A stretch of DNA of 63,981 nt, counting the filler, from Octopus bimaculoides (Eukaryota), in assembly GCF_001194135.2 (NCBI RefSeq). It is 9 parts of 7 records of this genome, joined end to end, with 100 filler letters (N's around TTAATTAATTAA, not from the genome) between each part and the next. Parts side by side here need not be neighbours in the genome. Positions count along the whole stretch, not along the records: positions 10,009 to 31,062 come from NC_068981.1; 8 more parts are not named here. One strand, written 5' to 3'. The notes under the pieces are model-generated. The model was given only the letters and a program-made list of their open reading frames with translations, was not told the origin of the DNA and made no database searches. Below, one piece after another: positions 23,550-24,812 of this stretch. A program made the translations under genes and the position numbers. The first letter of the stretch is position 1. Each line of letters begins with the position of its first letter.

Positions 23550-24812
23550 TATAAGACAATGGCAATGAATACGAAGATTAATACATCTGCATATAATTTT
23601 ATTTCTTCTATCAGTTATACATCATATCTCCTTTAAATGTATCTGACACACGCTTCTGCTACGCAGTCAACTAGCAATTGCATTTGCACCAGTTACTTTA
23701 GACTGGTTATAAGTCTATGCAACTTCATTCAAAGTCCGCCCACTGGCGTGGTTTCAAGCGAACGAAGTGTATGTAGGTTTAGCTATCGTTATTTTGTTAG
23801 GTTACTATAGTTTTTCAGTGCAAAGAATGTGAGAGGAAGATTTCGAGACCTGGTGCGACTATAAAAATTGTTATAGTGTTGACCTTATCCTGGCACTAGG
23901 TTTGAAGTTCGAATTGAGAATGCGAAACCTTTAATTGGATCAAAGAATATTTTTAAAACCCTAGCCTAAGGTGGATTATGAGTTAGTGATGCTCAGATAT
24001 TATGCACAATTACTGGTTACTAATTCAGATATACCACTTAAAAATATAAGATACGTGGAACTTACTTGTGACGCCAATTCGAATTTTTTTCCGTGTATAA
24101 ATCAAGTTTTAAGTTACATGCAGTTCCATCTTCCTACATGTGTTGCAAGTATTTTTAAAGATGTGTATTTTTAGTAATGGAGAATACTGATTACTAATTG
24201 ATATAGGCAAGCCAGATATCTGGCTTGCCTGTCCCAAGTATCAGTATTCTCTATAACTAAAAATACATATCTTTAAAAATTCTTGCAACACATATATGAC
24301 GATGGAACTGCATGTAGTTTAAAATTGATTTATACAAAGATATAAATTTCTAATTGGCCTCACAAGCAAGTTCAACGTATCTCATATATTTAATTATATC
24401 TGAACTACTAACCAGTAATTGTGTACATTATCTGAACATCACTAATTCATAATTCACCCTAAGGCTAGGGTTATCAAAAAATATTCTTCGACATAATTAA
24501 AGGTCTAGCATTCTCAATTCGAACTTCAAACCTTTGCACTGAAAAACTATAGTAACCTAACAAAATAACGATAGCTAAACCTACCATACACTTAGTTCGC
24601 TTCAAACCACGCCAGTGAGCGGATTTGAATGAAGTTGCATATATTTATAAGCAATCTTAAAGTAACTGATGCAAATGTAATTGTAAGTTGTCTATGCAGC
24701 AGAATCGTGCGTTAGACGCATTTAAAAGAAATATGCTGCATAATTGGTAGTAGAAATAAAAACATATGCAGATGTACTAATCACTGTACTCATTGCAATT
24801 GACTTAGATATA
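23550..24812. repeat. ~1.25-kb imperfect spacerless palindrome
   Basis: Arms colinear in reverse complement; perfect 26-bp centre aggcaagccagatatctggcttgcct at 24205-24230. Confidence 0.95.

Follow-up and report, generated by a model that had tools for sequence, protein, structure and literature searches.

The segment at 23540-24821 raises the question of how two copies of one sequence came to lie head to head without a spacer, and of whether the perfect 26 bp at which they meet have a role. Positions refer throughout to the window, which is the whole stretch of DNA analyzed (63,981 nucleotides, filler included); the segment lies in a 21-kb piece of it, at positions 10,009 to 31,062. An old fold-back element, a hairpin-capped break-repair product, and a hairpin-ended linear element had been proposed in a first-pass annotation of the locus. 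As described below, the element is an inverted duplication that is real but of an ordinary kind.

Extent and divergence of the two arms

The duplication spans 1.28 kb (1,282 bp) and is spacerless. Within the 21-kb piece, blastn recovers the unit as a match to its own reverse complement over 648 columns (E = 0), and a repeat scan finds inverted-repeat blocks in collinear order across it (left-arm blocks I1, I15, I18, I19, and I20). An exact-extension test places the axis of symmetry between 24217 and 24218. When the left half was aligned against the reverse complement of the right half, 524 of 601 columns matched (87.2% identity; K2P 0.14); of the 77 mismatches, 45 are transitions and 32 transversions, and the alignment contains 14 indels. 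Together, the E value, the collinear blocks, and the arm identity place the palindrome with diverged arms seen by the first-pass annotation far beyond chance. The inverted repeat stands as it was described, but its bounds of homology, previously put at 23550 and 24812, are corrected to about 23540 and 24821. Because homology continues through the axis with zero spacer, both arms stem from one strand-switch event, not from a pair of independent insertions. The parts of the unit discussed in this section are as follows, unstranded except where a strand is given.

About 23540-24217: left arm, 678 bp including a 74-bp extra piece (arm alignment, inverted-repeat blocks)
24218-about 24821: right arm, 604 bp, reverse complement of the left arm at 87.2% (arm alignment, blastn)
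23396-23553: compound (AT)n(AC)n(AT)n microsatellite, overlapping and adjoining the outer end of the left arm (TRF)
23824-23897: segment found in the left arm only, 74 bp (arm alignment)
23773-23825: longest perfect arm block, 53 bp, left copy, directly abutting the 74-bp indel (repeat scan, I19)
24532-24584: right-arm partner of the 53-bp perfect block (repeat scan, I19)
24011-24031, plus strand: 21-bp motif TACTGGTTACTAATTCAGATA (repeat scan, D7)

The outer end of the left arm runs into the compound microsatellite, which has no mirror counterpart on the right and is either flank or a secondary expansion. Faint collinear matches had been taken to suggest that the palindrome continues past this microsatellite. 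They are at chance level: the near-flank score was equaled or exceeded in 102 of 300 shuffles, and in a second test, by local alignments against real control segments, 72% of the controls scored at least equally.

The differences between the arms also bear on whether the unit exists in the genome at all. Such a structure could in principle result from a chimeric hairpin read or from an assembly graph that turns back at a palindromic k-mer, and the piece, a draft scaffold, contains three N gaps with simple sequence repeats (SSRs) on their borders. An artefact of this type would give identical arms, whereas the 77 substitutions and 14 indels found here are mostly substitutions, unlike long-read error, and a return along the other haplotype would demand 13% heterozygosity. 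We therefore regard an artefact as scarcely credible.

Divergence is not spread evenly along the arms. Identity per 100-column bin ranges from 81% to 97%, with the bin around the 74-bp indel at 97% and the others at 81-89%; the outermost columns (about 160-166) are 81% identical, versus 90% in the rest (Fisher p = 0.006). A maximum run of 51 or more matching columns has a probability of P = 0.05. The 97% patch occupies 23736-23909 and 24520-24623, includes the 53-bp perfect block, and straddles the left-only segment. It is a modest hint of local gene conversion, perhaps connected with the repair that produced the 74-bp indel. The left-only segment is present as first described, except that its size and bounds change from about 73 bp at 23826-23898 to 74 bp at 23824-23897. 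It is bounded by a 2-bp microhomology (AG/AG), holds a small hairpin of its own, protrudes as a side branch in the predicted fold of the unit, and has no second copy within the 21-kb piece. The simplest account of the length difference is that the right arm lost the segment by microhomology-mediated deletion; alternatively, the left arm gained it by insertion.

Two further features were noticed inside the arms. The 21-bp motif recurs 174 bp further in, at 24185-24205 (18 of 21 positions), with a right-arm counterpart at 24397-24417. Two motif matches were reached in 0 of 100 shuffles, and this motif, present twice per arm, is the sole subrepeat. Separately, when transitions are read in the sense of the arm, 32 are of the purine type (A/G) and 13 of the pyrimidine type (C/T), with a purine content in that sense of 49% (binomial p about 0.004-0.007, uncorrected and post hoc). 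Since this bias is mirror-symmetric, a global strand bias is excluded, and the pattern calls for a process that flips at the axis, or for noise. Possibly, it is noise.

The perfect centre, coding capacity, and relatives

The first-pass annotation placed particular weight on the centre of the palindrome, at which the following unstranded features lie.

24205-24230: perfect centre, 13 + 13 bp, AGGCAAGCCAGAT joined to ATCTGGCTTGCCT without a spacer (exact extension)
24192-24204: asymmetric patch, left half, 13 nt, TACTAATTGATAT (centre alignment)
24231-24239: asymmetric patch, right half, 9 nt, GTCCCAAGT (centre alignment)

Complementarity is exact for 13 bp on each side of the axis, and the centre is indeed perfect and loopless. 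In terms of independent observations, the 26 bp count as only 13 aligned columns, and at 87% arm identity a perfect centre of this length is expected about 1 time in 6. When the match/mismatch vector of the arm alignment was permuted and the terminal run scored, a run of at least 13 columns at the axis arose in 16.6% of permutations (P = 0.166). Runs of at least 13 columns occur 12 times elsewhere in the arms, and the longest perfect stretch is the 53-bp block, not the apex. The centre ranks 66th in GC content among the 1,257 26-mers of the element, six separate regions being equally or more GC-rich, and its sequence occurs a single time in the window. Folded as single-stranded DNA, it yields -44.4 kcal/mol (z = -15.5), as expected. 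Immediately beside it, the asymmetric patch comprises a 4-bp indel and four substitutions; being just outside the 26-mer, it indicates that the apex is not set in unusually good pairing. The left version of this patch (24192-24204) matches the 21-bp motif, through either an old internal repeat or templated mutation.

Conservation of the apex is thus within chance given the divergence of the arms. The earlier idea that an intact apex amid decayed arms hints at conversion loses its footing on the permutation result, the 12 other runs, and the unremarkable GC content. A resolution or binding site is likewise unsupported, with conservation at chance level and a cluster of indel and substitutions adjoining. 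We conclude that the 26 bp at the centre have stayed perfect by chance, and no role for them is evident.

We next consider what the unit encodes and resembles. In agreement with the first-pass annotation, no substantial ORF is evident, the longest being 67 aa. Stop-masked translations of the three forward frames of the element, which in a palindrome cover both senses of the arm, returned no Pfam domain at E <= 1; the empty Pfam search and the ORFs of at most 67 aa rule out a coding remnant. The 67-aa arm ORF has no relatives by a word-indexed search or by exhaustive HMMER, and exact protein look-up of 10 ORFs from the window gave no matches. An origin from a structured RNA or a SINE was also rejected, as all Rfam matches were sub-threshold and within the flanking microsatellites and ARAGORN found no tRNA. 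TRF detected no tandem repeat array inside 23554-24812. We found no second copy of the element within the 21-kb piece by blastn, and kinship to the other inverted-repeat elements of the piece was discarded for want of sequence similarity. A 23-mer and a 25-mer from blocks identical in both arms, together with a 22-mer from the centre, were absent from metagenome, viral, and prokaryote contigs, and the arm had no match among phage records. These copy-number negatives are uninformative, because the flanking LINE reverse transcriptase, multi-copy by nature, has just three relatives (at most 63% identity) in collections that evidently do not hold the host genome.

The annotated absence of a target site duplication (TSD) was borne out by a systematic scan over all plausible element boundaries. 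The best candidate was a flanking direct repeat of 8 bp, microsatellite-like in sequence, and 53 of the 200 placements used as controls had one of at least 8 bp. An SSR overlies the left end and could have erased an old TSD.

These results bear directly on the proposal of a hairpin-ended linear element, in which the unit would be a relic of a parvovirus-type terminal palindrome or dimer junction, a poxvirus-like concatemer junction, or a linear plasmid telomere, and the 26-mer would serve as the resolution site. The geometry fits, and in shrimp genomes there are inverted blocks of parvoviral EVEs whose junctions have short, perfect inverted repeats (PMC8982415). Against this, the apex is conserved at chance level, no frame contains a viral or plasmid domain, and the scanned flanking ORFs are transposable element (TE) fragments only, with no viral genes among them. 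In addition, the 22-mer centre and the two arm blocks are unmatched in 2.9 million viral contigs, the phage search was empty, and the published shrimp EVE junction sequence differs (PMC8982415). We consider this reading close to refuted and a relic of this type very improbable.

A different possibility concerns present function and would fit either a transposon or a duplication origin: the unit could be a hairpin-RNA (endo-siRNA) locus whose transcript would be diced after folding back into dsRNA of about 600 bp. The predicted transcript does fold almost end to end, with an RNA minimum free energy of -706 kcal/mol. Arthropods possess hairpin-RNA pathways. Inverted-repeat EVEs of shrimp have been proposed as dsRNA sources (PMC8982415). 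Yet the arms bear no mark of selection for pairing: on the plus strand, 18 transitions give G·U and 27 give A·C (27 versus 18 on the minus strand; binomial p = 0.23), and 14 indels have been tolerated, including the 74-nt bulge. Moreover, no source or target gene is evident, the arm ORF being without relatives and every frame without a Pfam domain. It therefore seems improbable that the unit is a transcribed hairpin-RNA locus feeding an siRNA pathway, or that the transition bias marks divergent transcription or replication from the axis.

Genomic surroundings and a neighboring palindromic MITE

The 21-kb piece (GC 37.6%; CpG observed/expected 0.74) consists of non-coding debris of TEs and SSRs. 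Its tandem-repeat content was measured at 7.8%, an underestimate given that the assembly breaks at SSRs; the N gaps, all of them bordered by SSRs, lie at 19528-19837, 26494-26780, and 30148-30232. SSR load and GC content are similar to those of published decapod genomes (PMC7878876). The following identifiable elements surround the palindrome.

10471-11700: pogo/Tigger transposase fragment (DDE_1), frameshifted (Pfam)
15268-17094: LINE reverse-transcriptase fragment (RVT_1)
18266-18831: whole-length palindromic MITE-like element, 566 bp (self-comparison of the piece)
30703-30942: fragment of a mariner-like transposase, at the edge of the 21-kb piece

The best relatives of the Tigger fragment are 69-71% identical and come from the shrimps Palaemon and Macrobrachium and the spiders Nephila and Araneus. 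At the DNA level, a Logan contig (SRR11869391) and an ENA metagenome scaffold match the LINE fragment at 72% identity across 1.8 kb, and the fragment's three protein relatives were the yield of a 5.8-billion set; this LINE lineage is thus poorly sampled. A short dispersed repeat occupies three sites in the piece (25829-26065, 17770-17993, and 29446-29508), and it also adjoins the LINE in the ENA metagenome scaffold (positions 1-88). Other inverted repeats are present as well. Two 52-bp copies, 90% identical and ~1 kb apart (13722-13773 and 14759-14810), enclose two minus-strand ORFs without a Pfam match (13786-14013 and 14062-14412). No obvious TSD was seen by eye at this pair, and 13722-14810 may be another element with terminal inverted repeats (TIRs). 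A 48-bp inverted repeat (26366-26413 and 26446-26493) abuts the second N gap.

The 566-bp element is the most instructive of these neighbors. It carries perfect 37-bp TIRs (GGATCTTTTTTAAAACGGGGGCCACATTTTTCATTAA) and an exact 8-bp TSD, GGAGTGTA, at 18258-18265 and 18832-18839. Its arms are 88.7% alike overall with many indels, an inner inverted repeat reaching 94% identity. The centre consists of head-to-head telomere-like hexamer arrays, (TAACCC)4 facing (TAGGGT)5, at 18504-18561. The hexamer is of the TTAGGG type; the usual telomere-type repeat of arthropods is TTAGG. This element is a bona fide insertion, and a young one. As it inserted with a TSD, the genome mobilizes whole-length palindromic MITE-like elements, and because a young element already has arms only ~89% alike, imperfect arms can be a family trait and need not mark age in place.

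Origin of the palindrome and known systems

In structure, the reading as an old fold-back element or inverted duplication holds, the unit being non-coding and without a TSD. We then asked what kind of event would best account for it, and our leading explanation, to which we give about an even chance, is that the palindrome is the remnant of a dead, non-coding, non-autonomous transposon of foldback/MITE type. Repair or replication of one transposon end would have folded back and copied itself, leaving two identical ends that could still be mobilized by a transposase supplied in trans. One copy would have inserted long ago into DNA rich in TEs and SSRs. Decay is visible in the unit as it now stands: substitutions separate the arms at 13% of sites and indels at 14 places, the outer ends are the most decayed part, no TSD is left, the left end is overlapped by a microsatellite, and the 74-bp indel at a 2-bp microhomology sets one arm apart from the other.

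The surroundings favor a transposon: the unit lies among TE debris (LINE reverse transcriptase, pogo/Tigger DDE_1, and mariner), and the 21-kb piece also harbors the palindromic MITE. Arthropods are known to have foldback-like transposons whose TIRs are very long, one of them being Galileo, a member of the P superfamily (PMC4168063). Stability is a further consideration, as the stability of palindromes falls with arm identity and with the absence of a spacer (PMC7999016). With arms at 87%, a bulge near the axis, and a 74-bp loop, the unit is no longer of the unstable perfect-palindrome type, and arms that were already imperfect at insertion would explain the survival of a 1.3-kb spacerless palindrome. 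On the other side, the unit has no TSD, no recognizable terminal motif, no tandem subrepeats, and no second copy in the 21-kb piece, and its outer ends, which a transposase would need, are the least conserved part. Measured as a MITE, it has terminal inverted repeats in that the whole unit is one, though the outermost 166 columns are just 81% alike, and it has no TSD. MITEs are usually under 800 bp in size. The element is non-coding but, at 1,282 bp, larger than typical MITEs.

The principal alternative is a one-off inverted duplication in situ of about 680 bp of adjacent unique sequence, followed by neutral decay of about 0.07 substitutions per site per arm. Here, a resected 3' end would have primed at a short pre-existing palindrome (e.g., CCAGATATCTGG), or replication would have switched template. 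The exactly symmetric centre with zero spacer accords with such an event, as do the absence of a TSD and terminal motifs, the lack of another copy in the 21-kb piece, and an ordinary substitution spectrum (45 transitions to 32 transversions). Snap-back palindromic duplications are known to be driven by short inverted repeats (PMC7999016; PMC7467729). However, a newborn perfect spacerless palindrome of 1.36 kb is the most unstable form (PMC7999016) and must survive until it has diverged, and an interstitial copy of 680 bp requires a second, return switch. The identity profile is also uneven (81% in the outer part, 97% at the indel, and 86-89% elsewhere; Fisher p = 0.006) and not simply clock-like, an unevenness for which gene conversion could account if the duplication arose in situ. 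Finally, the genome demonstrably has mobile palindromes. We therefore view an in situ duplication as a serious possibility, though one with clearly less than an even chance.

By itself, the element matters little, being one more degenerate inverted repeat in a transposon- and microsatellite-rich genome. If the host genome holds many copies, it would, together with its 566-bp neighbor, document whole-length palindromic transposons as a component of the repeats. Long inverted repeats of this kind are potential fragile sites and dsRNA sources.

Comparison with described systems gives partial likenesses in several directions. The IHHNV-EVE units of the decapod Penaeus monodon resemble the element in that they are inverted repeats on the kilobase scale whose inversion point has a short perfect palindrome, and hairpin dsRNA has been proposed to derive from them (PMC8982415). 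Their arms consist of recognizable viral sequence multiplied in blocks, whereas the element has no viral similarity and a different junction sequence. Snap-back or foldback inversions share with the element a single strand-switch, a head-to-head arrangement, and an axis at a short pre-existing palindrome (PMC7999016; PMC7467729). The described cases are usually large, of chromosome scale, with a short asymmetric spacer, and come from repair-deficient or tumor cells, in contrast to an interstitial germline unit of 1.3 kb without a spacer. Among transposons, classical FB elements have arms built of tandem subrepeats, of which TRF finds none here, and in Galileo the TSDs measure 7-8 bp and the terminal 40 bp are conserved; the element, by contrast, has no TSD and is least conserved at its termini. 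The neighboring 566-bp MITE differs in its unrelated sequence, 37-bp TIRs, TSD, hexamer centre, half size, and clearly younger age; like the 1.28-kb element, it is an inverted repeat over its whole length, is non-coding, has arms ~89% alike, and lies in the same genome neighborhood. Foldback-like transposons as a group (Drosophila FB; Galileo/Kepler/Newton) share with the element non-coding, AT-rich inverted arms of several hundred base pairs, and in their non-autonomous copies, as here, the arms make up most or all of the unit (PMC4168063).
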